Of a stretch of DNA of 63,808 nucleotides, positions 1,976 through 63,808 are shown piece after piece. The notes below the pieces were generated by a model, which saw nothing but the letters and a program-made list of their open reading frames with translations, did no database searches and had not been told where the DNA came from. The position numbers and the translations under genes are program-made. Position 1 is the stretch's first letter, and each line of letters starts with the position of its first letter. This DNA is from Chrysemys picta bellii (taxonomy: Eukaryota), in contig NC_088794.1 in NCBI RefSeq assembly GCF_011386835.1, forward strand, positions 1,240,193-1,304,000. Direction: 5' to 3'.

Positions 1976-3927
1976 AATCGGAGGGGCGGGTCTGCTCGGC
2001 ACCTGGTGTGCCGGAGGCCCCGCTCTCGGCGGTCGCTGGGAAGTGCTGCTGTAACAGATAATAATAAAGAGCCGTGTCGGTAACAGCGTTTGGGCTCCGG
2101 ATTTAACTCCCACGCGGCCTTGGCAGCTTTCAAAACCCAAGTCAGCAGAAATCAGCTTCCCTCCTAAACGCGCCACACGTCCTGCTTCTGCTTTCGCTGG
2201 AGATGGGCCGTTTCTACCCCAGGCTTTGGCGGATGGCCTGGTGCTGCCCGTTCTCCTACGTGGCGTTCCTCATTCCCCTCTGGGTTTGGCTTTGGGGCAG
2301 GTCTGTGGACACAGGGACGCAGGCTCTGGACCGGGCGTTGAGGCGAGGGATTTGCAGCCTGGGAACGTCTCAGGCGGGACAGAAGCGAAGGTGTTTGATT
2401 AATTCCCGAGTGACTCGTTTACAGACCTCGGTGCTCCGAAGAACTTTGCAGAATCGTCCCTTCCACGCCAGCAAAGGCGACTCGGCCGAGCCTGAGCTGG
2501 AGGGAGGGAGGGAGAGGGACCCTCCAAAGGACGTGCTGGGTTTAGACGGGCCCGAGACATAGAGCAGGCGATGAAATTCAATTCACAAACGGGAATTTTG
2601 CAAAGATCTGCAGGAGCCCTGAGCGCCGTGTCTAGCACGCCGAACGCAGTCCCGTCTGTCTGTCTCCAGCCGGCTGTCGTCTCTCCTCGTGCTGAGACTG
2701 TACGGTTCTCGGGGCAGGGACGTCTTGTGCAGCCCCTGGCACGACAAGGCCCTGATCCCGGCCGGGGGTCCTGGGGCGCCACTGTGAAGCAAAGAACAAA
2801 TAATAAAAATAGCAGCAAGCCGGGGGTGCGGGTGAGCCGTGTGGATGTAATGCACACCCCCCCCCCAGGGACCGGGGTGCAGCTGCTGGAAAGCAAAACA
2901 AACAGGGCTTCTCCATCTTCTCCTGTATCGATTACCGTTCTCTCACTAGCAGCGGAGTTCGGGCTGGGCCCGGGGCCTGCTCAGAACTGGGCGACAGTTT
3001 TTTGTAGCGGCTTCTTGACCAAAATGACAATTTTTCACCAAATTTAAATATTCCAGTTTATCATTTTAAAAATGGTCAAATTTCCTGTTTTCAATTTAAA
3101 AAACGTTGATTTCTGAGAACAGAAGAAACTCCCGAAGCAGGGCAGGTTCCCGCTGTGGGATGAAAAGCCAGGAAAAGTTTGCAGGAAATTTTTTAAAAAT
3201 TAATTCTCTGTGAGAAGCATGCGGCATTTTCTGTCCCTCTCTGATGAGGGGTGCGCGGCCGGCCAGGGGAACCGGGGCAGCTCCTGGCTCTGACACCCCC
3301 GGGCCCCTGAACCAACCCCACCTGGGCAGGTTTCTAGGTGGGGCAGGAGCGCCGCCAGAACCGACGCCACCACCAGGTGGGCCGAGCTCAGAGCCCCTAA
3401 GAGCCGGGACCCGGCCAGCGCTGACCCATCACCCGCCTCCGGGCCGGGCCTGAACCGAAACAGACCCCAGAGCAGAGAGAAACTCGCTGGGCCAAGAGAC
3501 CCCATAGGGAGCTGGACAGCGACCTCCAGCCTGAAACACACGGGTGACGGGGGGAGCTGTCGTACCCCCGGCGGGTCCCCCAGCTCCCAGCCTGGGGCTC
3601 CCCCGGAGGGATCCTCCGATCTCCCCCCCCAGCCCCAGGGGTCCCGGACCTTCCCGCTGGGATCCCCCCAGCGCACCCCCCCATTGCTCCGCTCTCCCGC
3701 CCCCCCCCGACGGGTCCGCCCCCGGGTCCCTGCCCGGGTCTCTGGGGTGGTGGGTCGGTGGTGCTCGGAGCCCCGAGCGGTGGGTCCCGCCCAGCCCCGT
3801 ATCCTGCCCTTATCTCGCCCGCCCAGCCAGGCCGGCCCCTCCCCTCCCCTCCCCTGCCCGCTGCAGCAGCGAAAGTCACGGGGGCTGGGGCCGCACCGCA
3901 GCGCCCCACACCGCACCGCCCCGCACG

Positions 3928-6900
3928 ATGCCCCTCGCCGTGGCGCCCGGCCTCCTGCTGCTGCTGCTGGCGAGCGGGGCCCGTGAGTAGCCGCCGGGGC
4001 CGCCCCCTGCTCCCCGGCCCCAGACCCTGCCCCAGGGGGGCGGCGTGGGCAGGAAACCCGGCCCCGCGGCCAGCCCGGGCGGTGCCTTGGCGGGATGGGG
4101 GTCCGGGCTGGGCGCAGGGTCCCGCCGGGCCTGGGGGGGGGGGTCTCCGAGCCAGAGGGGCTGGTGGGTGAAAGGGGGGACTGGGAGCCAGGACTCCTGG
4201 GTTCTCTCCCCGGCTCTGGGAGGGGAGTGGGGGCTGGTGGGTCAGAGCAGGAGGGGCTGGGAGCCAGGACTCCTGGGTTCTCTCCCCGGCTCTGGGAGGG
4301 GAGTGGGGGCTGGTGGTTAGAGCAGGGGGGTCTGGGAGCCAGGACTCCTGGGTTCTCTCCCCGGCTCTGGGAGGGCAGTGGGGGGCTGATGGGTGAAAGG
4401 GGGGAGCTGGGAGCCAGGACTCCTGGGTTCTCTCCCACACTGACACACCCCATGGCCAGCCCCCACTACAAACCCACGTCGTGCTCCCTCTAGGCCGCTC
4501 CTGCCCCCCAGCCCCATCGCACCCATCGCCCGCAACCTGCCCTGGGGTTCTGGGGCTAAATTTCAACACCCCCCCCCGCCCCCCACAGGGACCAGCTCAG
4601 CGCTGACGCCAGGGCCCTGGGGCGACCACTGTGGGGCTGGCAAGGGGGGTGTCATGGCCACCGAATTGGTTAATGCTGCTGGGGGGTGCACGGAGCCCTG
4701 ACCAAGTCAGCCCGGAGAGTTGCCCGATTAGTAGGAAGGCGGGTCGGACAGGTGGTGTTGGCTTTGGGGTGGGGGTTGGGTGTGGCGCTGACGTGGGGGT
4801 CAGACACAGGGCAGGGGTCCTGCTCACCACCCCAGCATGGGAGCAGTTGCGGGGAGGGTGGCCCCTGAGGGGAGCTTGAAGTAGGAGACTCAGGCTGTGG
4901 GTACAGAGGGGGTAGGTGGGGGGCTGGGGGCTCAGGCTGGGGGCACAGGGCGGGTAGGGGCTGGGGGCTCAGGCTGGGGGCACAGGGCGGGTAGGGGCTG
5001 GGGGCTCAGGCTGGGGGGCACAGTGCGGGTAGGGGCTGGGGGCTCAGGCTGGGGGCACAGGGCGGGTGGGGGGCTGGGAGTTCAGGCTGGGGGGCACAGT
5101 GCGGGTAGGGGCTGGGGCAGGGGGCTCAGGCTGGGGACACAGGGAGTGAGTGGGGGGCAGGTGGGGCAGGCTGGGGGGCACAGTGTGGGTAGGGGCTGGG
5201 GCAGGGGGCTGAGGCTGGGGGGCACAGGGGGCAGGTGGGGGGCTGGGGGCTCAGGCTGGGGGGCACAGTGCAGGTAGGGGCTGGGGACACTCAGGTGGGG
5301 CAGGCTGGGGGCACGGGATGAGTGGGGGGCAGGTGGGGCAGGCTGGGGGCACAGGGCGGGTAGGTGCTGGGGCAGGGGGCTCAGGCTGGGGGCACAGGGG
5401 GCAGGCTGGGGGCACAGGGCGGGTAGGTGCTGGGGCAGGGGGCTCAGGCTGGGGACACGGGGTGAGTGGGGGGCAGGTGGGGCAGGCTGGGGGCACAGGG
5501 CGGGTAGGGGCTGGGACCGTGACCGGGGTGGTGCTGGGGAACCATGTAACGGCCCCACCACAAGCTGCGCAAACAGGAAGCACGTCGCTTCCTCTGCCTG
5601 AGGCTCGGCGCCGCCTGCCCCCGCGGGAACCCAGCGCCCGGGCCACGTGGGACACGAGGCTGCCACGCCTCGGCCTGGAGCCCCCCCTACTCCCCCAGCA
5701 CTGACTGGCCCTTGCCGAGAGGATGTGGGCTCCCATGGTGCTGGGGCAGGTGGGGGGCTGGGGCAGGAGGCTTAGGCTGGGGGGCACCGGGCGGGTGGGG
5801 GCGGGAGGGGGTCAGTCCCTGGGGGGGGGGAGAGTCTCCCCCCTGGCTGCCCCACCCCTGCCCCCATGCCCCGCAGAGCGGCGAGTAATCCCGTCCGTCT
5901 GTCTGTCTGTGCAGGGGGTGCCCTGATGGTCTCTGTCCCCACTTCCCCGGTGCGGGCCCAGCCGGGCTCCGACCTGCTCCTGGGCTGTCACTTCTCCGTG
6001 GGGGGCACCGTGGACATGGAGGTGCTGGTGGTGCAGTGGAAGGTGGGGAGCCGCCTGGTGGCCGAGTTCGATACCACCCCGTCGTACCCCAGGGCCGGGG
6101 CCAGCCTGTCCCTGGAGGGGCTGCGGGTCGGCAACGCCTCCCTGCTCCTCCCGCGGGTGGGGGGCGCTGACGCCGGGCTCTACACCTGCATTGTCATCCA
6201 CTCCCCGAGCCGGGAGAGTCGGCAGGTGGAGCTGCGCGTGGAAGGTAACTGCAGGATGGGCTGGGGGGGCAGGGTTGGTTGGGGGGCAGGGTCCCAGGGC
6301 AGAGGCCAGAGGGGCCGTGGCTCCAGGGTTGGGTCCGGAGCCACCCTGTGGCCCCAGCACCTCTGGATAGGTCCGTGTTGGGAGCTCCTGCCCACGTGGC
6401 GATCAATGGGGGGAGGGTCCCAGCTGCATTGAGGGATCAGCCCCACTAAGCCACCTCCCCAGCTGCCCCTTCCCCATGGCCCAGCCAAGTCTCCATGGAC
6501 AGCACGATGGGGGCGGTTGGGGGTGGATGTGGTGGGGGGTGGCAGATGGGGTGGGGGGCAGATGAGGGAGGTGTGGGGCGGTTGGGGGCAGCTGAGGGGG
6601 TCTGGACCCCATTGACTCCCCCCTCCCCTTCCCCCCCCCAGCCCCGCCCCGTGTCTCGGTGAGCGGCACCGTGGTGAGGGCCGGCAAGCACAGCCCGGTG
6701 ACCTGCAGCGTGAGCGGCTTCTACCCCGGGAGCGTGAACGTCACGTGGCTGCGGGACAAGCAGGTCCTGGGGGGCTCCGAGACGCCTCCCGCCCAGCTGG
6801 GCCCCGACGGCCTGTACAGCACGACCAGCACCCTCCAGCTGGTGCCCAGCATCTCCCACGCCGACGCCAAGTACTCCTGCCACGTGCAGCACGTCGCCCT

Positions 6901-15971: not shown

Positions 15972-18055
15972 CGTGATCTCCCCCCCCCCCACACCGCCTG
16001 CCCCTCCCCAGCATGAACCCTACAAAGTCAGGAAGCGCCAAGTTCTGGGGCAGCTCCGAGCCGTCGCCTGATGCTCCCACAACATGTTTCCAGGGGCGGT
16101 GACAGACTCGCACCTCGCAGGGGAGCTCCTGGGGCCTGGAAGGGATGTGCCCAGCCGCTGGGATGTGCCATGCTCAGCCCGGGTCGACAGACACGCACTC
16201 AGTCTGCTCCAGCTACCGCCTGACAATAGCCGTGTGGGCACAGCGGGGCAGTGGGGGGCCAGGCTAGCACCGAGTGAGCACCCAGGGGCCAGGCAGGGCT
16301 GTACTCCGGTGACTAGCCTGAGCTCCCGCGGCCACGCGGCTGTTTTTAGCACCAGGCCGTCTGTCTGTCCCCGCTGGGAATGACCCCTCCCGGCCGCTGT
16401 GTAGACGTGCCCGGCCAGATACGGACACACCGCAATCGGCACCCGCATCTCCCTGCCAATACACCACCAAGCTGTCCCTGTGAGCTCCCACCCCGTACAC
16501 ACAGCTCTCTGGGTGGAGTGCAGGGAGATTGTCAGCACCTTTGGCGGCAGCCCTGCGCCAGTCAGTGGGGCTGGGAGCTTTTCACACCAGGGCCAGAGAT
16601 TCGTTTGTTCTGGTTCGTTCCTCCCCGGCTCAAACGGCTGCCGGGATCGTGCCCAGACGTTACACGAGTCACCTCGGGGGCCAAACCTCACAGGAACTTT
16701 AGCAAAGGTGTAGAATGAAACCCCTTGTGCAGCCGTAAATACAGCGTGTGCAGCATCGCCCACAGCAGCCTGGGGCAGGGATGTTGCCCCTTTTCCCCAA
16801 GGAGGGAAGGATTCCCTGGGATTTAAGGGCCAGCTGGTGATCCCCTCGTCAGGGTGGGTAGCAGAGCTAGAGTCACCTGTCAGCAGGTTCCCCTGGGCTC
16901 GGCCGTTACAAGCACATTACGAACCCTGGGGGATTCCTGGCCCAGTCCTGGTGCTTCCTTGTTTGGGTGCATGGGATTTAAATGTTTTCACACCTCAGCT
17001 CGGAGAGAACCAAGAGCCGGGACATGGGCATCTCGTGTGAGATCAGCCCTGTCTGTCCCCACCCGCCCCCTTTCCCAGCGACGCCTGAGTCGGTTCCCTG
17101 GAGAGACGTTAAATTCTCCCCTTTACCAGCTAGCGTGGGACATATCTCTGCTCTCCAAACTCCCTCACCATCAGCGCCCAGGGTGGACAGCACCTGACCA
17201 TGCTGGCAGCCTGGTTCTCTGGCCTGGGGAGGGAAGAGCTAACAAACAGCTCAGAGGCATGGGGGGCTGTTTCCCAGATACCCAGCCTGGAGCAGTTACA
17301 GCCAGGTCTGAGCTCGGTATGTCCCAGGATTCCCGGGGCAGGCAGCGAGCTGTGGGGCCCCCCAGAACCCAGCACCCACCTGGGTGAGGTCATGGGGTGG
17401 TTTCTCCCCCTCTCGGGGCAGGGTCTGTTCTGTGGATGGCAGGGCTGGGCAGTGTGGGGAGCAGAGGTGGGTCAGCTCCCAGGGACTGAGTCTGGTGTAT
17501 TCACAGGGTCCCCAGGCAGGGGCCTCATTCCCGTTCTGTTCCTCCCTCCAGGTGGCCCGCTTCTGGATGGAGACATGGCCATTTTTTGACCGTCCTGCAC
17601 TCACGCTACGGCCGGTGCTGGGGGGAGAGAGAGAGCCAGCTGCAAACTGCTCGTAGAGGAGAGAACAAACTGACCCCTTGTGATGCTGTGTGATTGACAT
17701 GTGACTGTGTACAGCCTTGGTGTGGCCACTGTGCTCCAACTGCAAGAGAACTTGTACCAAGTGCGTCGTGTCCGGTGTCACTGGAAAAGTTGCGAATTGC
17801 TAAGTATGGATATCCTGCTTATATGTGTACCACCCCCCGCCCCCGTCCACTGGCCCAGTGTGAGGTTGTTCCAGATAGGGGAAGCCTCTTTGTGACCTTT
17901 TACACAACTTTAGGGGACTGGGCCTGAGGCTCCTTTGTGTGCTCTGCGTTGTGTGTCAGTGTGTTCACCTCAGCCCAGACCCACTCAGACAAACCACCAG
18001 AGAGCGCGACCGCACTGTCCCTTTAAGGCGCTTTAAGCTGCTAAGTGTCGACTCA

Positions 18056-50700: not shown

Positions 50701-52275
50701 GGACACACAGCGGGGTGGATGGGGGGCAGGGCCCCCCCAGCCTGTGCTGACCCCGCCCTTCTCGCCCGCAGTACGTCGTGGTCCCCACACGCCGCTCCAC
50801 GGCCGAGTCCTTCCAGATCGTCATGTCCCACCTGCTGGGCGACGCCGGCAGCCCCTACCTGATCGGCGTGGTGAGTGCGCGGCAGCGGCACTGCTGGGGG
50901 GAAGCTCGCAGCGCCGGGGGGGTGCTGGGGATTGTGGGACGGCTCCGCTCACCCTCTCTGCCCCCCAGATCAGCGACAGGATCCAGCGGGGCCGCCCCCC
51001 GTCCTACCTGCTGGAGTTCCACAGCCTGCAGTATGCCCTAATGCTGAGTGCCTTCGCCGGGGTGCTGGGGGGCGGCTTCTTCCTCGCCACCGCCCTCTTC
51101 ATCCAGGGCGACCGCAAGCGGGCGGAGCTCAGCACCCAGGGTACGTCCCCCCGACCCCCAGCGCCCCCTAACCCCATTGCCTCCCGCTGCCCCCTAACCC
51201 CATTGCCTCCCGCAGCTCCCCCCCGGCCCCCCACACCTGCCCTCTTCATCCAGGGCGACCGCAAGCGGGCCGAGCTCAGCACCCAGGGTACGTCCCCCCA
51301 GCGCCCTCCAGTGTCCCCCAGACCCCTAACCCCATCATCTCCCTCTGCCCCCTAATCCCGTCACCTGCCGCAGCTTCCCCTGGCCCCCCACACCCGCCCT
51401 CTTCATCCAGGGCGACCGCAAGCGGGCGGAGCTCAGCACCCAGGGTACGTCCCCCCAGCGCCCTCCAGTGTCCCCCAGACCCCTAACCCCATCATCTCCC
51501 TCTGCCCCCTAATCCCGTCACCTGCCGCAGCTTCCCCTGGCCCCCCACACCCGCCCTCTTCATCCAGGGCGACCGCAAGCGGGCGGAGCTCAGCGCCTAG
51601 GGTACGTCCCGCCGACCCCCAGCGCCGCCCAGCGCACCCCAGCCTCCTGCTGCTCCCTAACCCCGTTGCCTCCTGCCGCTCCCCACTGAGCTCCCCACAC
51701 CTGCCCTCTTCATCCAGGGCGACCGCAAGCGGGCCGAGCTCAGCGCCAAGGGTACGTCCCCCTGACTCCCAGCGACCCCCAGACCCCTAACCCCGTCACC
51801 TCCCGCTGCCCCCTAACCCCATCACCTCCTGCTACACCCCCGCACCCCCACGCTGCCGCCGAATTGAGCAGCCAGGGTACATCCCCCCCCAGCGCCCCGC
51901 AGCCTCCTAACCCCATCGCCTCCCGCTTCCCTCTAACCCCGTCACCTCCTGCTGCACCCCCAGCCCCCCACGCTGCCGCTGAGCTCAGTGCCCAGGATAC
52001 GTACAGCCCCACAGTGCCCCCCACTGCCCCGAAATCTTGGTAATCAAGATTCCCCCCCCCCCATCCCCAATGGCACCTGCAGCTCTGTGCCCAAGCTGCA
52101 GCCCTGGTGCCCCCCACATCGAGCCCTGCCCCACTGCCCACCATGTCAGCCCCCCTGACTCTCCCCCCTCCCTCCGCCAGGCCTGCTGCCGGAGGAGACC
52201 GAGCCGGAGGAGCGTATTGTGGTGCCAAAGCGCGGCCGATCCACCAAAGTGCCCGTCTCCAGTGTCCTCATCTGA
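38756..52275 (+). CDS. SPNS1: Spinster homolog 1, lysosomal MFS transporter, 521 aa
   Basis: Exons 38756-38978, 39256-39321, 39492-39628, 42805-42956, 43337-43403, 48120-48262, 48679-48834, 49300-49489, 50286-50351, 50772-50870, 50969-51140, 52181-52275 sum to 1566 nt in frame. Motifs: [51 protein letters not shown]-terminal [20 protein letters not shown] at 52641. Confidence 0.97.
39747..41714. mobile_element. About 2-kb non-autonomous DNA element with long AT-rich imperfect inverted repeats
   Basis: About 39796-39980 is the reverse complement of about 41525-41712 (ggggaattctgcaccaaaaa...tttgtcaaaataacac...gtacgtctgaaacaa); TA on both outer flanks. Confidence 0.7.
41717..42570. repeat. G-rich minisatellite in SPNS1 intron 3
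   Basis: gagagctggagcggtgcagaggggctgggggctgtgcgtgggggagctgtgc units; related units also lie left of 39747. Confidence 0.9.
45302..45846 (-). mobile_element. CR1 LINE 3' fragment inserted between RT and RNase H of the LTR element
   Basis: [19 protein letters not shown]...[12 protein letters not shown], nearly identical to the copy at 56842-57563. Confidence 0.92.
46630..47266 (-). mobile_element. Solo LTR nested between integrase and RT
   Basis: Interrupts ...EIRVVPH / PCSYPQLFS...; flanks TGGGG/TGCGG; ends ccactttgtcaca. Confidence 0.8.
48885..49290. repeat. About 41-bp minisatellite in SPNS1 intron 7
   Basis: gtgacccctgaactctgacccc units. Confidence 0.85.
49465..49855. repeat. Five-copy array of the SPNS1 exon-8 end and donor site
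   Basis: cagcagcgtcgccacctac|gtgagtcc with donors at 49490, 49575, 49666, 49760 and 49845. Confidence 0.9.
50400..50640. repeat. Minisatellite in SPNS1 intron 9
   Basis: ggcccttagccggcccctgggagtga units. Confidence 0.8.
51090..52005. repeat. Array of the SPNS1 exon-11 end and donor site (5 intact plus 2 degenerate copies)
   Basis: ccgccctcttcatccagggcgaccgcaagcgggcggagctcagcacccagg|gtacgtcc with donors at 51141, 51288, 51445, 51602 and 51752. Confidence 0.9.
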
Positions 52276-52869
52276 GACCCACACACACCCCCGGCGCTGG
52301 GGCCGGGCACCGCCGGCCATGCAGAGACTCTCGCTGCCCCCCACTGGCTGGGCTCAGGGCGGGCGGAACTGTGCCAGTTTGGGGGGCTGGTTTTTATGTG
52401 GGCGTGGAGCTCCCCGTGAAGGAAACGGGGTCAGGGACATGGATGGGGCACCCTGGGCTGGGACAAGCCAGGGACCCCCAACTGAACACCCCCAGGCCCC
52501 TGGCGCAGGGAAGGGCTTAGGGACTGAGGGGGGGCCCTTGGATTCCTTGGGGGGGTGGGCTGTGAGGCCCCCCAAGGTCATACAGGTCCCCCTTGGGGGG
52601 CTGGGGTCCTGCCCCCGTCCAGCCACCATATTTTCACCCCATTAAACTCTTTGTTACGTCTCCTGCTGCTGGTCTCTGTCCCGGGGGGCAGGACTCCGGG
52701 CCGTGCTGCCGGGCCCGGCTCCCCCCTGGGAGGGCATTAGCCCCCCACTACGCCCCCCCTACCCTGGGTGTGAGCTCTGCTCCTTGGTGAGCCACTCGCC
52801 CCCTTGCACAAGAGCGTGAGCCCTCGTGCCCCTGTGGGGGAGGCCCTCTGAACCTCACACACCTGCCGC

Positions 52870-52998
52870 TCGCTCAGCGCTACGACTTCCTGCCGGGAGC
52901 TCATTGCCCGCCGCAGCTTCCTGCCGGGGGGAGAGCGCGAGCAGCGCGGCGTGGGTGGCAGCGCCGGAGGAGCCAGCGCCGGACGCGCCACGGCCCAG
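52870..52998 (+). other. Candidate non-coding first exon and promoter of LAT
   Basis: CpG-rich, no ATG, ETS-like CTTCCTG at 52885 and 52916, strong donor CAG|GTAGGT at 52999, about 230 bp after the SPNS1 poly(A) signal; 5' boundary is a guess. Confidence 0.5.
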
Positions 52999-53809
52999 GT
53001 AGGTGCCGGCCCCCCCGCCCGGCTGCAGCCACAGGAAGCCGGACGTGGCGTCTGTCCCCCGGGGCCGGCCAGATGCACGGACGCTCCCCTCCGCCCCCAG
53101 CTGCTAGCATCAGCCTGCCATCTGGGTGACCCTATTGTGCGCTGGATTCGGGGCTGGGGCCCTCTCGGGGGCCGGGCGAGGGCCCTGGACTGGGGGGTCT
53201 CCAGCCTGTCCTGTGGGTCTGAGCCAGACTCTGCTTGGCCCCCTGCCTGTGAAATCCCCCCGCCTCTCCTGCTGGGGAGTGGGAGTGGGGGGCTCTCAGC
53301 TCCCCCAAATCTCCAGTGACTGGCCCAGACCCACGGCGCTATTCCCCGGACCCCGCGCGGCCACTCCCGGAGACGGGGGCTGTGGCCCCCCAGCCGGGGC
53401 TTGTGCCTGTGACCCCTGCAGGGATAGTGGTGGGGGCGAGGCTCAGTGGGGGCCTTGGGCGCTGTCCGGAGACGGGGCCTGGACCAGGCATCTCCCCTCT
53501 GGGGTTCGCAGATGAGGTTGCGAAGGGGCCAGTGGTGACCCTGGGGGGCTGCCCGGAGCAGGTGTTGCCGTGGGGCACGGTGGGGTTGGGCACCGGGGGG
53601 CAGCGTCTCCAGGGTGTGCCGCGCCCCCCGATACCATCTCGGCTTTTCCTGTTTTGCTGCCTCGAGCGCGAGCTCCATCCGCGGGGCGTTGGCGCAGGCA
53701 CGGCGCCCCCCTCGGGCCGGGACAGGCAGCGCAAGCATGCGGCCAGGGCCCACGCGGAGCCGGATGGTCACTCAACGGCGCCATGGGGTTGGGACCCTTC
53801 AACCCCAAC

Positions 53810-54640
53810 CCACCGTTAGCCCTGGGCTCCCCTGCTGCTCCCCCACCTATCCGGTGTCCCTCAACCCCGACCCACAACCCCGATTAGCCCTGGGCTCCCC
53901 CCTGCCCCCCCATCTCTCCACTGCCCCTCAACCCCGACCCACAGCCCCTGTTAGCCCTGGGCTCCCCCACTGCTCCCCCCCCCACCTCTCCAGTACCCCT
54001 CAACCCTGACCCACAGCCCCTGTTAGCCCTGGGCTCCCTCCTGCCCCCCCATCTCTCCACAGCCCCCATTAGCCCTGGGCTCCCCCACTGCTCCCCCCCC
54101 CTCCAGTGCCCCTCAACCCTGACCCACAGCCCCCTTTAGCCCTTGGCTCCCCCACTGCTCCTCCCCACCTCCAGTGCTCCTCAACCCCGACCCACAGCCC
54201 CCTTTAGCCCTGGGCTCCCCCACTGCCCCCCCTCCAGTGCCCCTCAACCCTGACCCACAGCCCCTGTTAGCCCTGGGCTCCCCCACTGCTCCCCCCCACC
54301 TCTCCAGTACCCCTCAACCCCGACCCACAGCCCCTGTTAGCCCTGGGCTCCCCCTTGGCCGCCCCACCTCTCCAGTGCCCCTCAACCCCGACCCACAGCC
54401 CCGTTAGCCCTGGGCTCCCCCCTGCCCCCCCACCTCTCCACTGCCCCTCAACCCCGACCCACAGCACCCATTAGCCCTGGGCTCCCCCACTGCTCCCCCC
54501 CACCTCTCCAGTACCCCTCAACCCCGACCCACAGCCCCTGTTAGGCCTGGGCTCCCCCACTGCCCCCCCTTCCAGTGCCCCTCAACCCCGACCTACAGCC
54601 CCCGTTAGCCCTGGGCTCCCCCACTTCCCCCCCCCCACCT
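53810..54640. repeat. About 63-bp C-rich minisatellite
   Basis: ttagccctgggctcccccactgc...cccctcaaccccgacccacagcccc units. Confidence 0.9.
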
Positions 54641-56841
54641 CTCCAGTGCCCCCATCAGCCCTGGTCTCCCCACCCTACTCCTGCTGGTGCCCCTCAATCC
54701 TAACCTTGATGGGGGTCCCCCCCATCTTGTTCTCCAGCTCCCCTACCACCCCCCCGCCCGGTTCCTCTCGAGTGAGTTCCCAAGCGCTGCCGGTTTCCGC
54801 CCCTAACCGACCCGGTGGTTTGTGGTCGCCCCTTGGCCACGCTCCAGGGCTCAGGCTGTCCGGCCAGGGCCTGTTTGCAGGAGCGGCACTGGCAGGGCCT
54901 GGCCTGGATGGGGGCCTGCCAGGGAGACGCGTCCAGCCCTGTGTGGGGCTGTGCCCCTCTGACACATGGGGACTGGGACAGGCGCAGGATGGGGGTCGTG
55001 ACTGGGAGCCAGGACTCCGGGTTCTGTCGTGGTTCGGGGGTGGGGGGTCTAGTGGGTAGAGCAGGGGGGGCTGGGGGTCAGGACTCCTGGGTTCTCTCCC
55101 CGGCTCTGGGAGGGGAGTGGGGACTGGTGGGTTAGAGCAGGGGGTGCTGGGAGCCAGGACTCCTGGGTTCTCTCCCCAGCTCTGGGAGGGGAGTGGGGGG
55201 AGGGCTGGGAACCAGGACTCCTGGGTTCTTTCCCGGGCTCTGGGAGAGGAGTGGGGGCTGGTGGGTTAGAGCAGGGGGGGCTGGGAGCCAGGACTCCTGG
55301 GTTCTCTCCCCAGCTCTGGGAGGGGACTGGGGTCTGGCTGGGAGCCAGGACTCCTGGGTTCTATCTGTGTGCTTTGGGGCTGGTCCCTGCTCCCAGCAGA
55401 GCGTCAGTTTCCTTTCTCACCCTTTGTGTGTTTTGGGCTGCGAATGCTGTGGGGCTGGGACTGTCTCTTCCTCTGTGTCTGGGCAGCACCTGAACTCATG
55501 GGCCTTTGATCTGGGCAGTGGGGGAGGAGCAACTGGGCAGAGCCCAGGGAGTTTGGGTAGGTCCTATTATAATAAGGGACAATAAGAGAGGTGTGACTCT
55601 GGCGTGCGTGGGGATGGTGCAGACGGCTGGGGCAGCGGGAGCCTGGCGCACCCCGGGGTCTCTGGCGCAGGGGCCTGGCCTGCGTGTGAGCTGGGCCCCG
55701 CTGCGGCTGCTTTGCCGGGAGCTTGGTGCAGGCCCCAGCCGAGGCTCCCCGGGGGCGGCAGCTGCAGCGAGAGCTGGGCGCCGCTGGGGTGGAAACCGCA
55801 GCTGCAGAGACGGAGCCGAGCGGCGCCTGAGCCAGCAGCCCCGCTCCCTCCACCCACCTGCTGCAGCAGCAGATCCGGCCTCCCCCACCCCGGTGACTCA
55901 GCCTCGCCCCCCAGCAACCGGCAGGATCCGGTCCCACCATCAGCCAAGCCTGGGACCCGGCGCGCTGGGCGCTGCACAGACCCCGCGAGAGACGGGCTCA
56001 GTGATGCCAGGCTCAAGGGTCGAGGGCCTGGTGCAGATATCACAGCCTGGCAGGCAGCAGAGCCAGGGATGGAACCCAGGTGTCCTGGCTCCCAGCCCCC
56101 CCTGCTCCAACCCACCAGGCCCCACTCCCCTCCCAGAGCCGGGGAGAGAACCCCGGAGTCCTGGCTCCCAGCCCCCCTGCTCCAACCCACCAGCCCCCCT
56201 CCCCTCACAGAGCTGGGGAGAGAACCCAGGAGTCCTGGCTCCCAGTCCCCCCTGCTCCAACCCACCAGCCCCCACTCTCCTCACAGAGACTGGGAGAGAA
56301 CCCCGGAGTTCTGGCTCCCAGCCCCTGCTCCAACCCACCAGCCCGCACTCCCCTCCCAGAGCCAGGGAGAGAACCCAGAAGTCCTGGCTCCCAGCCCCCC
56401 CTGCTCTAACCCACCAGCCCCCACTCTCCTCACAGAGATGGGGAGAGAACCCCGGAGTCCTGGCTCCCAGCCCCTGCTCTAACCCACCAGCCCCCCGTCC
56501 CCTCCCAGAGCCGGGGAGAGAACCCAGGCGTCCTGGCTCCCAGCCCCTGCTCTAACCCACCAGCCCGCACTTCCCTCCCAGAGCTGGGGAGAGAACCCCG
56601 GAGTCCTGGCTCTCAGCCCCTGCTCCAACCCACCAGCCCGTACTCCCCTCCCAGAGCTGGGGAGAGAACCCAGGAGTCCTGGCTCCCAGACCCCCCTGCT
56701 CTAACCACCAGCCCCCACTCCCCTCCCAGAGCTGGGGAACGGACCCAGGAGTCCTGGCTCCCAGCCCCCCCCTGCTCTAACCACCAGCCCCCACTCTCCT
56801 CCCAGAGCCGGGGACAGAACCCAGGAATCTGGAGAGATCCC

Positions 56842-57563
56842 ATACACTGCTACAGACTAGGGACCGAGTGGCTAGGCAGCAGTTCTGCAGAAAAGGACCT
56901 GGGGGTCACAGTGGACGAGAAGCTGGATCTGAGTCAACAGTGTGCTCTTGTTGCCAAGAAGACTAATGGCATTTTGGGCTGTATAAGTAGGGGCATTACC
57001 AGCAGATCGAGGAACGTGATCGTTCCCCTCTATTCGACATTGGTGAGGCCTCATCTGGAATACTGTGTCCAGTTTTGGGCCCCACGCTACAAGAAGGATG
57101 TGGAAAAATTGGAAAGAGTCCAGCGGAGGGCAACAAAAATGATTAGGGGTCTGGAGCACATGACTTATGAGGAGAGGCTGAGGGAACTGGGGTTATTTAG
57201 TCTGCAGAAGAGAAGAATGAGGGGGGATTTGATAGCAGCCTTCAACTACCTGAAGGGGGGTTCCAAAGAGGATGGCTCTAGACTGTTCTCAGTGGTGGCA
57301 GATGACAGAACAAGGAGTAATGGTCTCAAGTTGCAGTGGGGGAGGTTTAGGTTGGATATTAGGAAACACTATTTCACTAGGAGGGTGGTGAAGCACTGGA
57401 ATGGGTTACCTAGGGAGGTGGTGGAATCTCCATCCTTAGAGGTTTTTAAGGTCAGGCTTGACAAAGCCCTGGCTGGGATGATTTAGTTGGGGTTGGTCCT
57501 GCTTTGAGCAGGGGGTTGGACTAGATACCTCCTAAGGTCCCTTCCAACCCTGATCTTCTATGA
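56842..57563 (+). mobile_element. CR1 LINE 3' fragment (about 720 bp)
   Basis: ORF 56911-57486 is the CR1 RT C-terminus ([28 protein letters not shown]); 3' end tcttctatga. Confidence 0.95.
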
Positions 57564-57684
57564 GTCCTGGCTCCCAGACTCGCCCACCCTGCTCTAACCC
57601 ACCAGGCCCCACTCCCCTCCCAGAGTCTGGGAGAGAACCCAGAAGTTGGGGTTCCCAGCCCCTCACCTAAATACTAAACCCCAC

Positions 57685-60600
57685 TGTAACGAACTGGGAC
57701 TGTTCTTAATGTGGTCTTTAAATGCTTTACTGGCTGGCTGAGAGTCATGGTAAATCGCAGGAAGCCGGGGGTGAAGGGCCTTGTGTCCCCCCACACTCCA
57801 TGACAACTGGTGGCAGTGGTGGGATCTACTGCACCCCGTGGACGGTGCTGTCTGCAGTAAGTGACTGGGGAGCAGTAAAATGAAGGGGGATCGACGGGGA
57901 CCAGGTGGGCTGAAGAGTCAGAAAGAGACAATTTCAGGGGGCGATTCACCCCTGGGAGTGTGTGACCAGAGAGAAGGACTGTTGCAGTAACAGGGTCCCC
58001 CGGGGGATCGCAGTGAGTGGTCCCAGGGCAGAGGAGTCTGCAGCTCGACCCTGGCAGAGAGGGGGTGACCTGAAGAAGGGCTGGCACACTAGGGGTCCCC
58101 CTGGAACGGTGGAAAGCGGAGAGCACAGGCCGGCGAGTGGCCAGCAGGAGGATGGATGCTAAACGCCTCAAGAGCGACCTGGTGGAGCAGTGCAGGCAGA
58201 GGGGGCTGCGCATTGAGAGGTCCACCAAAGAACAGCTCATTGCCCAGCTGGAGGAGAGGGATCGCTTGGATGAACCGAGCCCTGTCCCTGAGGGAAGCCG
58301 CCCGGCAGATGCAGCGTGGGCCCCGGGGCCTGACATGGCTGGGAGGGGTCAGACTGCTGCCGAGGACATCCCGAGACCCTGCCTACCTATACCTAGGGGA
58401 GGGGTTGGGGGAAGCCCAGCGAATACCGAGGGCACCCTGACCCCGGCGGCCAGCAGCGGATCGTCCCGGCAGAGCTCCCCGTCCCTGGAGCAGAGGCGGC
58501 TGGAATATGAATGGAAAATGAGACAAGCTTGAGTTAAGGAAGCAAGAACTAAAGCAGAAGCGAAAAGAATGGAAAAAGCGTCAGCATAAAAAGAAACAAC
58601 GTCAGCAGGAGCGGGAAGAGAAGGAGAACCAAGGTCAGCATGAGCTGGAACTGGCCAGGCTGAGGAGCAGTGAGGCCCCGGCTGCGGTGAGCGAGGGGGA
58701 CCCAAGACTGCAAAGAGCTTTGATCAGTGCTTCCTGGCCCAGCGTAAGGAGGGGGAGGACATGGAGACCTTCCTGACGGCCTTTGAGAATACCTGCGAGC
58801 TGCTCCAGGTTGACCCTGTAGACAGGCTCCAGTTTCTCATCCCCTCACTGGACCCCACAGCCAGGGAGGTGTACAGCCGACTGAAAGGGGCGGAGACAGG
58901 GGACTACGAACTGTTCAGAAAGGCCCTGCTCCGCGAGTTTGGGCTGAGCCCTGAGATGTACCGGAAAAGGTTCCGGAGTCAGCGTAAAACCCGCGAGGTC
59001 ACATACCTACAACTGGCCAACCGGGCGCAGGGGTATGCCCGCAAGTGGACAGCTGGGGCCCAAACTATAGAGGACCTGCTTGACCTATTCATACTGGAGC
59101 ACCTGTATGAGCAGTGCCCATCCGACCTGAGGCGATGGTTGATGGACCAAAAGCCAGAGAACCCGCAGCACACAGGCCAGCTGGCCGACGAGTTTGTGAA
59201 CAGCCTGGCAGGGGATAACAGGGAGGAGTCCCAAAGGAACAGGCCCGCTACAACGCAGAGAGAGAGTGACCCTGGAACCTCCCAAAGGGGAAACATGGCG
59301 AACCCTCTCCCAAGGGGAACACCCAGTGTCAGGACCAACCGACCGGCTCGAGGGGACCCACGGGACATGGGCTGTTATCACTGTGGCCAGAGAGGCCACA
59401 TACGGACCCAGTGCCCCAAGCTCAAGGACAGACTGAGCAGACCGAACCCACAGAGGGTCAACTTGGTAGAGACCCAGCCAGACAAGGTAAAAACGGCCCA
59501 GGCAAGTGGGGCTGACAGCTTCCCAACGGCTCAGGAGGGAGGAGTGGCCAGGCCAGCTCCTCTTGGGGGCTGGATGCTCTGGACTCAAGGTTCTCCGTTT
59601 ATACGGTAGGCGCGGGGCTGTCCCTGCGGAGCAAGTGCCTTGTTCCCCTGGAGGTGGATGGGAGGAAGGTCAATGGATACTGGGATACGGGCGCAGAGGT
59701 GACGCTGGCCCGGCCCGAGGTGGTGGCTCCAGATCAGGTGGTGCCCAACACCTACCTGACCCTGACGGGGGTGGGTGGGACCCCATTCAAGGTGCCCGTG
59801 GCGAGGTTACACCTGAAGTGGGGGGCCAAGGAGGGCCCCAAGGAAGTGGGGGTGCACCACCATTTGCCCACTGAGGTGTTAATGGGGGGGGACCTTGAGG
59901 ACTGGCCAAGCAACCCCCAGGGTGCCCTGGTCATAACCTGTAGCCAGAGCTGGCGAGGGGCACTGCGCCCTGACAACGGTGGGGAGGAAACACCCAGGGA
60001 CACGGATCAGGGAGGCTGCGGCTTCAGACCCAGCCGGCGAGAGAGAGCAGGTGGCCATCCCTGTCCCAGCTGCTGAGTTCCAGGCCGAGTTGCAGAGAGA
60101 TCCCTCCTTGCGGAAGATAAGGGACCTGGCCGACCTCAATGCGGTACAGACCATGGGACGAGGTGGCCGGAAAAGGTTCCTGTGGGAGAAGGGGTTCCTG
60201 TACCGAGAATGGGCTCCCCCAGGGAAAATGGAGTTGGGGGGGATCAGGAGGCAGCTGGTGGTACCCCAGAAGTATCGCCGCCAGCTGCTGTGCCGGGCCC
60301 ATGACATTCCCCTCTCAGGGCACCAGGGAACCTGGCGTACCCAGCAGAGGCTGCTACGGAGCTTTTACTGGCCTGGGGTCTTTGTTACTGTCCGACAGTA
60401 CTGCGGATCCTGTGACCCCTGTCAGAGGGGGAGGAAGGTCCGGGACAAGGGGAAAACAGCTTTAGGACCCTTGCCCAGCATAGAGGAGCCTTTCGAGAGG
60501 GTGGCCAGGGTAAAAAGGGCGGCTCTGAACCAAGAGAACCCGAATCAGCGACCTCCAGACTGGAGCGCTGGGAGAAGACCCCAGCCCAGTTGGAACCCCA

Positions 60601-61904
60601 GGGGTATTGGGGTGGGAAAAGGACACGGGCCGCATAAACGCTCCCACATGCGAACTACAAGTGCCATCGACGTAAGGGGGGGCGTGAAACTGGAGGGGCC
60701 TGGTGTAATTCCCACTCAGGAATGGGAGGGATGCGGGGGCATCCACGGGAATGGGGGTAGATTCGAACTTCCCCGGGTCACTGGCTGAAGTGACCCTGCT
60801 CAGTTCAGTCTCCCCGTGACGAACTGGGACTGTTCTTAATGTGGCCTTTGAATGCTGAGTGGGGGGTGTTGGCTGGGAAGGCAGCGGAGTGTGGCTAGGA
60901 TGGTCTGCATTGGGGAAGGGGAGACTGACCGAAGGAGAATACCTGAGCATGTAACATGAGAACCCAGGAAGGGGTTAGAGGCCAGGTGACACCTTTGCCC
61001 GGGAAACTGAACAAAGTCTGGGGGAGGAGCCAGGAGAGGCTGGGTGAGAGATGCTGGAGGGAGTTGGAGTTGTCAGGAGCTGGCTGGTGTAATGGAGGGG
61101 AGCCCAGACAGGTAGGGTTACCATATCTCATAAATAAAAAAAGAGGACCCTCCACGGGCCCTGGCCCCGCCCATTTCCCCACCCCAACTCCGCCCCTTCC
61201 CCACCCTAACTCCGCCCTCTCCTCCCTCCCACTCCCAGCCACGCGAAAAGGGCTGCCCGAGCGCTACCGGCTTCACGGTTTGCCGGGCAGCCCCCAGACC
61301 CTGCGCCCCCAGCCGGCGCTTGCCCAGCGCAGCTGGAGCCCGGGAGGGGAAGCGCCCAGCCGGGGGCGCAGGGTCTGGAGGCTGCCCGGCAAACCGTGAA
61401 GCCGGTAGCGCTCGGGCTTCGGGCAGCCCCTATGCCCCCGGACCCTGCGCCCCCGGCCGGGCACTTCCCCTCCCGGGCTCCGGCGGCGCAGGGTCTGGAG
61501 GCACGGGGGCTGCCCGAAGCCGGTAGCGCTCGGGCAGCCCGGCTCTTAAACAGAGCCGAAGAGTCGGGGAGGAGCAGAGCCGCCATTTTCCTGGACATAT
61601 TCGGCTTTTTGGCAATTCCCCCCGGACGGGGGTTTGAATGCCGAAAAGCCGGACATGTCCGGGAAAAAGAGGACGTATGGTAACCCTACAGACAGGGCTC
61701 TGACCTCCCAAGGGGGCTGTGGGGCCCTGCGACCCCAAAATGGACCTAACTCAGGGGGGTCCTGTTGTGTGTACCTGCAAGACCTGTCTTGGACTGTGTT
61801 CCTGTCGTCTAAATAAACCTTCTGCTTTACTGGCTGGCTGAGAGTCATGGTGAATCGCAGGAAGCCGGGAGCGCAGGGCCTTGTGTCCCCCACACTACGT
61901 GACA
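57685..61904 (+). mobile_element. Gmr1-like non-autonomous LTR retrotransposon (gag-pro plus integrase N-terminus), second copy
   Basis: 5' LTR 57685-57805 (internally deleted); PBS TGGTGGCAGTGGTGGGAT 57808-57825 (17/18 match to the complement of the tRNA-Leu AAG/TAG 3' end); frameshifted gag-pro; 3' LTR about 60815-61904; flanks CCCAC/TCCAC. Confidence 0.92.
61113..61688. mobile_element. hAT-superfamily MITE (576 bp) inside the 3' LTR
   Basis: TIRs TAGGGTTACCATA/TATGGTAACCCTA; perfect 8-bp duplication CAGACAGG (61105-61112, 61689-61696); internal 38-bp perfect inverted repeat (61255-61292, 61380-61417). Confidence 0.93.
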
Positions 61905-61954
61905 TCCACTCCCTGAGCTGGGAAGAGAACCCAGGAGTCCTGGCTCCCCTCCCC

Positions 61955-62640
61955 CACACCCCCAGGTGCGATGGAGGCCGTCTCTCTGGCCGGGGTCCCC
62001 CTAACTCCCTCTCCCCCCCCAGGAGCGATGGAGGCCGTCTCTCTGGCCGGGGGTCCCCCTAACTCCCTCTCCCCCCCCAGGAGCGATGGAGGCCGTCTCT
62101 CTGGCCGGGGTCCCCCCCAACCCCCTCTCCCCCCCGAGGTGCGATGGAGGCCATCTCTCTGGCCGGGGTCCCCCCTAACTCCCTCTCCCCCCCCCAGGTG
62201 CGATGGAGGCCGTCTCTCTGGCCGGGGGTCCCCCTAACTCTCTCTCCCCCCCCCCAGGTGCAATGGAGGCCATCTCTCTGGCCGGGGGTCCCCCTAACTC
62301 CCTCTCCCCCCCCAGGAGCGATGGAGGCCGTCTCTCTGGCCGGGGGTCCCCCTAACTCTCTCTCCCCCCCCCCAGGTGCAATGGAGGCCATCTCTCTGGC
62401 CGGGGGTCCCCCTAACTCCCTCTTCCCCCCCAGGAGCGATGGAGGCCGTCTCTCTGGCTGGGGTCCCCCTAACTCCCTCTCTCCCCCCCCAGGTGCAATG
62501 GAGGCCATCTCTCTGGCCGGGGGTCCCCCTAACTCCCTCTCTCCCCCCCCAGGTGCAATGGAGGCCATCTCTCTGGCTGGGGTCCCCCTAACTCCCTCTC
62601 TCCCCCCCCAGGTGCAATGGAGGCCATCTCTCTGGCCGGG
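61955..62640 (+). repeat. Twelve-copy 57-60-bp array of the LAT acceptor, start codon and first 8 codons
   Basis: cctaactccctctcccccccag|g(t/a)gc(a/g)ATGGAGGCC(a/g)TCTCTCTGGC; ATGs at 61971, 62028, 62086, 62144, 62203, 62263, 62321, 62381, 62439, 62498, 62558 and 62617. Confidence 0.95.
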
Positions 62641-63481
62641 GTGCTCTGGGCCTTCGTGCTGGTTCTCCCGGCGGTGCTGGCCACGGCTCTCTGCATCGGC
62701 TGCCGGGACACGGGCTCTCCTGGTAAGTCCAGTGCCCCCCCCGCCCCCATACAGCGTGGCCCGGGCCTGGGGGGCTGCACATGGGCTGCCCCAGCTCCAG
62801 CCATGGGGGCAGCGTGACATTCACCTGCCCCCCATGCCTTTCTGCCCCCCCCAGGTACCCCCCTTGCCCCCACCCCTGCTCCCCCCCCAGAACCCTCCCA
62901 CAAACACCCTGCTCCCCCCAGGGAAACCCCCACACGTTCCTCCCCCCTGAGCCCCCCCAACATACACCCTGCTCCCCTCCAGACCCCACACCAGCCCCCT
63001 CCCCTGTGCTGGGCTACCATGGGGGGTCCTGTCCCCTCAATCTCTCCCATCCCCCGCAGGAGCAGAGTGGGACGGACCCCCCCTGCCCCCACCCCTAACG
63101 CTGCGCCCTGCTCTCTCGCCAGCCCACGGAGCCCAGGCGGTCGGGGACTACGAGTACAAGTGAGTCCGTCTGTCCCCATGTCTGTCTGTCTGGCGCACAA
63201 CGAGGGAGCTGCCCAGCAGGGGCTTGGGGTCCCCGGGGGAGGGGCGAAGGGTGGGACAGTGGGGTGGGGTGTTAAGGGCTGGGATTGGCCAGGGGGCAGG
63301 GGGGTCTGGGCATAGGGGGGCTCCCTTGGGGTGAGTTTGGGGGGGCAGGGGGTCTCCCTGGGGGTATCTGGCAGGTGCTGAGGGGGGACCTTGCCTGGCT
63401 CTAATGGCATCTCCTCTGCCCCCCACAGACCCCCACCTTGTGTCCCCCCCAACAGCTTCATGGTGCTGACCAGAGCCAACT
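62617..63481 (+). CDS. LAT: Linker for activation of T cells, 5' part (continues past the window)
   Basis: Exons 62617-62722 (MEAISLAGVLWAFVLVLPAVLATALCIGCR: N-terminal TM plus CxxC palmitoylation motif), 63123-63159 and 63429-63481, with compatible phases; lies directly after SPNS1 as in mammals. Confidence 0.85.
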
Positions 63482-63489
63482 GTGAGTAC

Positions 63490-63808
63490 CCCCCATGCAC
63501 CCCACCCCGTACCCCTGTAACCCCTTGTATCCCCTGCACCCCACCCTGTACCCCTGTGACCCCTCGTATCCCCTGCACCCCACCCTGTAGCCCTGTGACC
63601 CCTCGTATCCCCTGCACCCATCCCCTATCCCCCCCCACCCTGTATCCCTGTAACCCCTTGTATCCCCTGCACCCCATCCCCTAATCCCCACCCCCACCCT
63701 GTATCCCTGTGACCCCTCGTATCCCCTGCACCCATCCCCTATTCCCCACCCCCACCCTGTACCCCTGTGACCCCTCATATCCCCTGCACCCATCCCCTAT
63801 TCCCCCCC
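63490..63808. repeat. C-rich minisatellite in a LAT intron
   Basis: ccctgtacccctgtgacccctcgtatcccctgcacccca units. Confidence 0.85.

Follow-up and report, generated by a model that had tools for sequence, protein, structure and literature searches.

LAT acts as the central scaffold in signalling from the T-cell receptor, and how much of it is present matters in mammals. The sequence analysed here (the window) is a stretch of 63,808 nucleotides from the painted turtle Chrysemys picta bellii (contig NC_088794.1, positions 1,240,193 to 1,304,000 of the forward strand) that carries the first exons of LAT close to its right-hand end. Directly ahead of the LAT coding sequence lies a minisatellite in which each of twelve units holds a 3′ splice site followed by a start codon.

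The first coding exon of LAT (62612..62722, + strand) has its ATG at 62617, comprises 35 codons plus 1 nt and ends at a GTAAGT donor from 62723. It encodes a short N-terminus of 8 residues, a hydrophobic stretch (the transmembrane helix) and then C-I-G-C, a C-x-x-C motif with two putative palmitoylation sites by likeness to mammalian LAT. In a full HMMER search the peptide of 62617-62722 is 91% identical to the N-terminus of a 241-aa Chelonoidis protein (P0001), which matches the Pfam family LAT (PF15234) at 2e-21; the 35-residue exon peptide alone gives a weak PF15234 match (E=0.29, positions 1-32). A word-index protein search with residues 27-66 of a 94-aa open stretch gave no hit, an uninformative result, since LAT at full length exceeds the length range of that search. 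The protein annotated as LAT in Chrysemys and Malaclemys (P0028) has first 69 residues that read identically to the window exons 62617-62722, 63060/63123-63159 and 63429-63481. Judged by these matches, the gene downstream of the array is LAT. The locus L008 of the Chrysemys picta bellii assembly agrees with 61700-62800 of the window in every letter. Its exon structure is seen in RNA. Contigs of three small RNA runs (X15, X16 and X17) and of one DNA run were compared with window positions 57809-63808. Each RNA run yields one LAT contig, spliced at 62722|63123 (62721/2 to 63122/3) and at 63159|63429, both with GT..AG borders, which fixes the donor of the first coding exon and the next two exons, namely the short form of the second coding exon (63123..63159, +) and the following exon (63429..63481, +), which begins with KPPPCVPPNSFMVLTRAN and agrees with orthologous proteins. 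The second coding exon has two in-frame acceptors, 63060 and 63123, set 63 nt apart. All three RNA contigs take 63123 and produce the short form, like the 225-aa LAT proteins of sea turtles, while the NCBI model P0028 takes 63060 and gains 21 extra proline-rich residues.

The minisatellite occupies 61933..62641 on the + strand and consists of 12 units of 57-60 bp. Tandem Repeats Finder (TRF) reports a single array at 61959-62641 with a period of 58, 11.6 copies, 91% matches and a score of 1060. The exact 9-mer ATGGAGGCC occurs twelve times (at 61971, 62028, 62086, 62144, 62203, 62263, 62321, 62381, 62439, 62498, 62558 and 62617) at a spacing of 57-60 nt, and an independent repeat search returns the same 12 copies in register. 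A sequence-only reading of this stretch had described twelve acceptor-plus-ATG cassettes of just this length, and the three methods agree with it. Each unit is made up of ~33 nt of intron end (CTAAC, a C/T tract and AG), a 5-nt leader and the first 25 nt of LAT coding sequence; the AG is followed by GTGCR or GAGCG, then by ATGG and a further 21 coding nt. The acceptor G lies at 61965, 62022, 62080, 62138, 62197, 62257, 62315, 62375, 62433, 62492, 62552 and 62611. It belongs to a CAG in eleven units and to a GAG in unit 4 (62138). The CTAAC motif is found in 10 of the 12 units, ~20 nt before the AG and separated from it by C and T only; it is absent only before units 1 and 4. All twelve ATGs have G at -3 and G at +4, a strong context. 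The GGG|GTCCCC present in each unit was also considered as the donor of a mini-exon and was rejected, as only 3 positions match the donor consensus and the leftover intron would be ~28 nt.

The reading frames decide what each unit could encode. The ATGs at 62086, 62203 and 62263 share the frame of the LAT ATG at 62617 and are halted by a TAA at 62176 or 62353. The remaining upstream ATGs are out of frame, and the one at 62144 starts an overlapping open reading frame of 268 codons (62144-62950) that ends at the TGA at 62948-62950. Only unit 12 continues into the transmembrane exon (62617-62722), and acceptor 62611 alone gives an mRNA in which the LAT ATG is the first ATG. The splice-site motifs, the ATG contexts and the frames had all been listed in the sequence-only reading, together with the statement that only the last unit yields LAT, and direct reading of the letters bears them out.

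Two unit types, GGAGCG..G and GGTGCA..A, alternate in part along the array; unit 2 is identical to unit 7 and unit 6 to unit 8. Identical pairs and alternating types are the signature of recent unequal exchange. The array fits a minisatellite or variable number tandem repeat (VNTR), with similar units head to tail, concerted evolution and a higher-order structure. The unit types also differ at codon 4 of LAT. The A/G at 62626 is an Ile/Val difference between them as well as between the LAT proteins of Chrysemys and Emys, and the X15 LAT contig ends right after this position. A polymorphism seeded by conversion from upstream units may be the reason, a guess from one contig end.

The count of 12 units comes from one assembly. 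Short-read contigs break within the array, and the assembly of the closely related Malaclemys has 3 units, both of which would fit an assembly artefact in a locus that truly holds one or few units. The units, however, carry diagnostic variants and a higher-order pattern. The DNA run, which may share its animal with the assembly, gives contigs of 83-115 nt inside the array, and the 115-nt contig matches units 3-5 exactly. Arrays of 5-17 units are found in independent assemblies of Emys, Chelonoidis, Lepidochelys, Caretta (two, identical) and Eretmochelys. The probability of an artefact is next to negligible, and the earlier argument that the array is not a simple one is strengthened by the unit variants and by comparable arrays in six other turtle species, all assembled independently.

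The CAG ahead of the LAT ATG is a genuine 3′ splice site. This premise, on which the sequence-only reading had depended, holds in softshell mRNA compared with its genome and in a joint at 62607-62613 on the X16 contig. The softshell RNA contig (L002, 1408 nt) has a leader of 502 nt ahead of the LAT ATG. Its nt 1-499 align with positions 3698-4196 of the Pelodiscus genomic sequence L005 and its nt 495-608 with 17241-17354, separated by a 13-kb intron. The splice join reads ...GGCCCAG | GTGCGATGG, so the acceptor is the CAG 5 nt before the ATG. BLAST searches with the leader of the softshell mRNA and with the upstream block of Carettochelys locate the matching exon in the window (52858-53000 and 52799-53076), where the exon-1 block is 85% identical to the softshell mRNA. 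The conserved 3′ part of LAT non-coding exon 1, together with the proximal promoter, spans 52858..52998 on the + strand according to BLAST and a six-sequence alignment; the exon ends in ...CCCAG and its donor GTAGGT starts at 52999. Exon 1 and the donor CAG|GTAGGT are conserved in all turtles of the alignment, the window, softshell, Carettochelys, Chelonoidis and Lepidochelys among them, and the block contains two invariant TTCCTG (Ets-like) motifs. Turtle LAT thus has a non-coding exon 1, and its first coding exon starts 5 nt before the ATG. It is this intron/exon boundary that recurs in the units of the minisatellite. Intron 1, derived from donor 52999 and acceptor 62611 (52999..62611, +), would measure ~9.6 kb with splicing at the last acceptor. 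Within it lie minisatellites of 70-73 bp, a CR1 tail, a long terminal repeat (LTR) retroelement and eleven of the twelve cassette units.

Human LAT is not known to have an intron between its transcription starts and the ATG. The array could on that model lie in the promoter or 5′ untranslated region (UTR) of a first exon, with the likeness to acceptors a chance product of a C-rich tract. Human LAT does start its transcription in a G/C-rich region without a TATA box, 250-335 bp ahead of the ATG (PMC1382244), and the X17 contig runs colinear with the genome across 62611. Against this model, the splice in the softshell mRNA falls at precisely this AG and brings in an exon from 13 kb upstream, the window conserves that exon along with its donor, and the joint in X16 lies at the same AG. 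The absence of an intron is largely refuted and very improbable.

The orthologous locus in other turtles, where the sequence-only reading had suggested looking, carries arrays of 2 to 17 units in at least three turtle families. The comparison spans emydids, a tortoise, sea turtles and trionychians, and the counts include the true start. Chrysemys (the window) and Emys orbicularis each have 12 units; those of Emys are 59-63 bp long and mostly have CCAAC for CTAAC, as a result of which two upstream ATGs open in frame. Malaclemys has 3 units. The 5 units of Chelonoidis are decayed (76% matches), two of them with 9-nt deletions. Among sea turtles, Lepidochelys kempii has 11 units (40- and 65-bp), Caretta has 17 (the same in two assemblies) and Eretmochelys, the hawksbill, gives 13.6 and 15.6 TRF copies in its two assemblies. 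Pelodiscus and Carettochelys have 2 units each with the upstream copy already decayed, in Carettochelys without an AG. Copy number is thus highly labile between species, from 2 to 17, and the variability expected by the sequence-only reading extends to the two hawksbill assemblies. Large arrays are those of emydids, tortoises and sea turtles. On the sequences, the first duplication would be older than the split between trionychians and other cryptodires, or would have occurred twice. Diagnostic variants are common to most units within a species, CTAAC in Chrysemys, CCAAC in Emys, and 40/65-bp units with ACG in sea turtles, evidence that these units evolve in concert.

The start codons of the upstream units differ between lineages. 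In sea turtles ACG replaces ATG in the nearest 3 upstream units of L. kempii, in 4 of those of Caretta and in all but the first of the hawksbill. Selection against upstream ATGs would account for this replacement, as would GC-biased conversion or a single variant spreading neutrally. The upstream ATG closest to LAT is out of frame with the LAT ATG and overlaps it in Chrysemys, Emys, Malaclemys, Chelonoidis and Caretta, in keeping with the earlier statement that splicing to any upstream unit puts strong upstream ATGs ahead of LAT. The Mauremys mutica LAT isoform X1 of NCBI starts in an upstream unit, in frame, which adds 19 residues. Normal-length LAT proteins are annotated in the turtles compared.

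These observations bear on the proposal of a selected, copy-number-tunable attenuator (a 'dial'), in which the share of the upstream acceptors depends on unit number and cell state and sets the dosage of LAT through upstream open reading frames (uORFs) and mRNA decay. The acceptor is genuine and the cassettes are complete, and the array has been kept from trionychians to emydids and sea turtles. Close relatives differ in unit number (3 in Malaclemys vs 12 in Chrysemys, 13.6 vs 15.6 in the hawksbill assemblies), and Mauremys mutica isoform X1 begins in an upstream unit. The change from ATG to ACG in sea turtles opposes the usual direction of CpG decay and would fit pressure from the load of upstream ATGs. 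However, GC-biased gene conversion could drive the same change, and neutral homogenisation would lead to the pattern seen, with the ATG retained by some lineages and not by others. The 3 units of Malaclemys against 12 in Chrysemys and Emys give no sign of a constrained copy number, and similar arrays occur in neighbouring genes and introns, so that a mutational explanation suffices. Even with the RNA data described next, part of which speaks for it, such a dial is distinctly unlikely.

The RNA runs are informative on acceptor use to different degrees. The LAT contig of X15 begins at 62627 and says nothing about the acceptor. In X16, which derives from another emydid-like species, a contig of 1055 nt has 62607-62721 linked to a segment similar to 59394-59496, the two sharing six letters (CCCAGG) at the joint. 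It differs from the window at 1 position in 115 nt of the exon and at 7 in 103 of the upstream segment. When the join is set at 59501|62612, the skipped piece starts with GCAAGT after AG and ends in CAG, a GC-AG intron that uses the last acceptor. The LAT contig of X17, from the painted turtle, is colinear with the genome over 62568-62721 with 0 differences and passes the last AG into unit 11. Both X15 and X16 also have low-depth contigs inside the array (~5.5-6.7, vs 6.8-12.9 for the LAT contigs); Logan gives a single depth value per contig, inflated by shared k-mers, and depth was rejected as a measure of copy number. X15 has no contigs in introns 2 and 3, which are largely vacant in X17 too. 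The RNA contigs contain no junction onto an upstream unit within 57809-63808, a stretch outside which the exon-1 donor lies.

The X17 contig can be read in two ways. Its colinear path into unit 11 counts in favour of the dial. Together with the array contigs of X15 and X16 it is compatible with use of upstream acceptors and equally with partly spliced pre-mRNA. The latter is possible because contigs merge any overlapping 31-mers, because k-mers common to several units clear the abundance threshold more easily, and because a GC-rich exon-1 path could drop out at low coverage. If all colinear RNA is unspliced or partly spliced pre-mRNA, the array would be a pure intronic passenger, with the last acceptor the only one used and the upstream units leaving with intron 1. 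Both transcripts that display a junction (softshell and X16) use the last acceptor, and LAT proteins of normal length are annotated in these turtles. Contigs cannot tell mature RNA from pre-mRNA, and multi-unit k-mers are boosted, so the array contigs of X15 and X16 may be rare pre-mRNA. On the other hand, eleven near-identical acceptors, with a branch motif ~20 nt upstream and an unbroken pyrimidine tract, are unlikely to be wholly ignored, and the path assembled with spliced LAT exons in X17 is the colinear one and not the canonical junction, with scarcely any depth, or none, over introns 2 and 3. A pure passenger is unlikely.

The reading we prefer, and hold to be probable with limited confidence, makes the array a minisatellite of decoy acceptors that is tolerated and exerts at most a passive attenuation on LAT. 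The GC-rich minisatellite has reproduced in tandem the junction of intron 1 with the first coding exon of turtle LAT, and the eleven upstream copies would act as decoy 3′ splice sites inside intron 1. Exon definition would favour the last copy, presumably because it is close to the real exon body and to donor 62723, and would so permit LAT production. Splicing to an upstream copy, or retention of the last part of the intron, would bring strong-context upstream ATGs into the mRNA, most of them out of frame with the LAT ATG and overlapping it. Little LAT would come from these mRNAs, and nonsense-mediated decay would probably remove them. The array would have arisen and persisted by unequal exchange, as a tolerated by-product, in a stretch rich in minisatellites close to the end of a chromosome. 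Any effect on dosage would be a passive attenuation that rises with the number of ATG-bearing units and not a regulated switch.

Several points weigh against the tolerated array of decoys. The main LAT contig of X17 takes the colinear path and not the canonical junction, which at face value suggests that inclusion of upstream units is not rare. The stretch 57809-63808 excludes the exon-1 donor (52998/52999), so that exon 1 junctions of the painted turtle are not visible there. In Chrysemys and Emys all 11 upstream ATGs stand in strong context, and 4 remain in the decayed array of the tortoise. Retention of the ATG and the sea-turtle change from ATG to ACG could both reflect selection over neutrality. 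Persistence since the cryptodiran ancestor is also long for an array that is purely neutral and mildly harmful. A stronger version, in which the array is a heritable stepwise attenuator, is unlikely. Each ATG-bearing cassette would divert some splicing into a decay-prone mRNA laden with upstream ATGs, unequal crossing-over would change dosage in steps, and ACG would offset the load in the hawksbill and other sea turtles.

The nearest documented parallel comes from human INS, where a weakly spliced intron in the 5′ UTR adds uORFs and lowers translation (PMC2939332). In INS intron 1, and as predicted for turtle LAT, a 3′ splice site near the start codon determines by its choice or efficiency the entry of upstream ATGs into the leader, and out-of-frame uORFs lower translation of the main open reading frame. 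INS, however, has one weak acceptor and one short retained intron, whereas turtle LAT has an acceptor-plus-ATG cassette in 2 to 17 copies that unequal exchange can change. A second likeness is to tandem and alternative 3′ splice sites, NAGNAG and more widely spaced ones, where several AGs share one donor (PMC2018619, PMC2699507). Known tandem acceptors share a branch point and tract, lie 3-30 nt apart and fall in coding sequence. In contrast, the turtle LAT AGs each come with their own branch motif and tract at 58-nt spacing and are located in the leader, and spliced use is seen for the last site only. The array also resembles VNTRs that modify expression (e.g., the INS VNTR mentioned in PMC2939332) in its GC-rich units of 40-65 bp, its higher-order structure, its differences in copy number among species and between two assemblies of one species, and its place near the start of a gene. 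The turtle LAT unit, however, is no anonymous DNA, for it duplicates an initiation codon and the 3′ splice site ahead of it, both functional signals.

The same gene offers a further comparison. In human LAT two Ets sites are needed in the proximal promoter (PMC1382244). In human and mouse, as in turtles, the upstream neighbour of LAT is SPNS1 and the block of the proximal promoter holds motifs of the Ets type (PMC1382244). Unlike human LAT, with its starts 250-335 bp upstream of the ATG, turtle LAT has a separate non-coding exon and an intron that ends 5 nt before the ATG, a boundary that has been amplified. A limited literature search, by which absence is not proven, returned tandem-acceptor and 5′ UTR-intron/uORF work only, and no description of a repeated acceptor-plus-start-codon cassette or of turtle LAT was found.

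In cryptodiran turtles the acceptor and start codon required for a productive LAT mRNA have thus been amplified into an unstable array. If the decoys are used, minisatellite instability, 3′ splice-site choice and uORF/mRNA-decay control would be joined in one natural system, and species with 2, 3, 5, 11, 12 and 17 copies and with ATG/ACG variants would provide ready-made comparisons. If they are unused, the locus would be a clean natural experiment on how the spliceosome passes over as many as 16 near-perfect competing acceptors less than 1 kb from the real one. If the attenuator reading is true, a minisatellite of functional splice and initiation signals would act through decoy acceptors. The gene structure is also corrected, as turtle LAT has a conserved non-coding first exon and a promoter block just downstream of SPNS1.

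The neighbour on that side is represented in the window by an SPNS1-like C-terminal open reading frame at ~51 kb. A gene of the MFS family (522-581 aa) lies directly upstream of LAT in 3 other turtles (L004, L005 and L006), and a Mauremys model is named spinster homolog 1. SPNS1 lies directly upstream of LAT in mammals as well. An ATTAAA at 52631 is the probable SPNS1 poly(A) signal, with the conserved LAT exon-1/promoter block ~200 bp downstream; at this distance the LAT promoter would adjoin the 3′ end of SPNS1. In Pelodiscus the SPNS1-type gene and LAT exon 1 have between them a tandem array with a period of ~45 bp (L005 3059-3830). The softshell LAT RNA contig has its 156 nt on the 5′ side in this array, and the far 5′ end of the contig may not belong to one transcript.

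The region is rich in minisatellites, with four besides the LAT array within 13 kb. A 157-bp unit at 51090-51829 duplicates the last part of an SPNS1 exon and the donor behind it. A 70-bp unit is found at 54057-54652 and a 73-bp unit at 56058-56826, and 39/58-bp units at 63492-63808 lie within a LAT intron. The 73-bp unit is a genome-wide turtle element that occurs both interspersed and in tandem; it adjoins the left edge of the LAT array with the motif GAGAACCCAGGAGTCCTGGCTCCC at 61920-61950. Turtle LAT loci lie 0.24-1.3 Mb from the ends of chromosome records.

Directly upstream of the array, in intron 1 and in the orientation of LAT, lies a degenerate LTR retroelement of ~4.2 kb (approximately 57700..61900, +). 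It retains pieces of gag-, protease- and integrase-like open reading frames, with a gag-like one at 58761-59609. Its LTR-like ends, at 57723-57791 and 61823-61891, form a direct repeat of 94% identity, 4100 bp apart. The element is emydid-only, orthologous in Emys and Malaclemys at ~93% identity and absent at this position in Chelonoidis and sea turtles. The upstream segment of the X16 LAT contig falls in its gag region (zinc knuckle), as an exon at 59394..59501 (+) whose donor would be AG|GCAAGT at 59501/59502; the GC of this donor is conserved in three emydids. The join suggests either an alternative upstream exon derived from an endogenous retrovirus or an LTR-driven LAT transcript.

Two further observations concern LAT proteins outside the window. 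'Uncharacterized' transmembrane adaptors of 187-203 aa in Mauremys and Chrysemys (P0043, P0046, P0049 and P0051) may represent a LAT-family paralogue. They have a C-x-x-C and several Y-x-N motifs, and are oddly placed in a 90% cluster of sea-turtle LAT. In Mauremys mutica a pair of LAT 'isoform X1' proteins (P0033 and P0034) that differ by 1 residue comes from one 164-Mb record, which suggests a duplicated LAT locus in the assembly; both begin at the ATG of an upstream unit.

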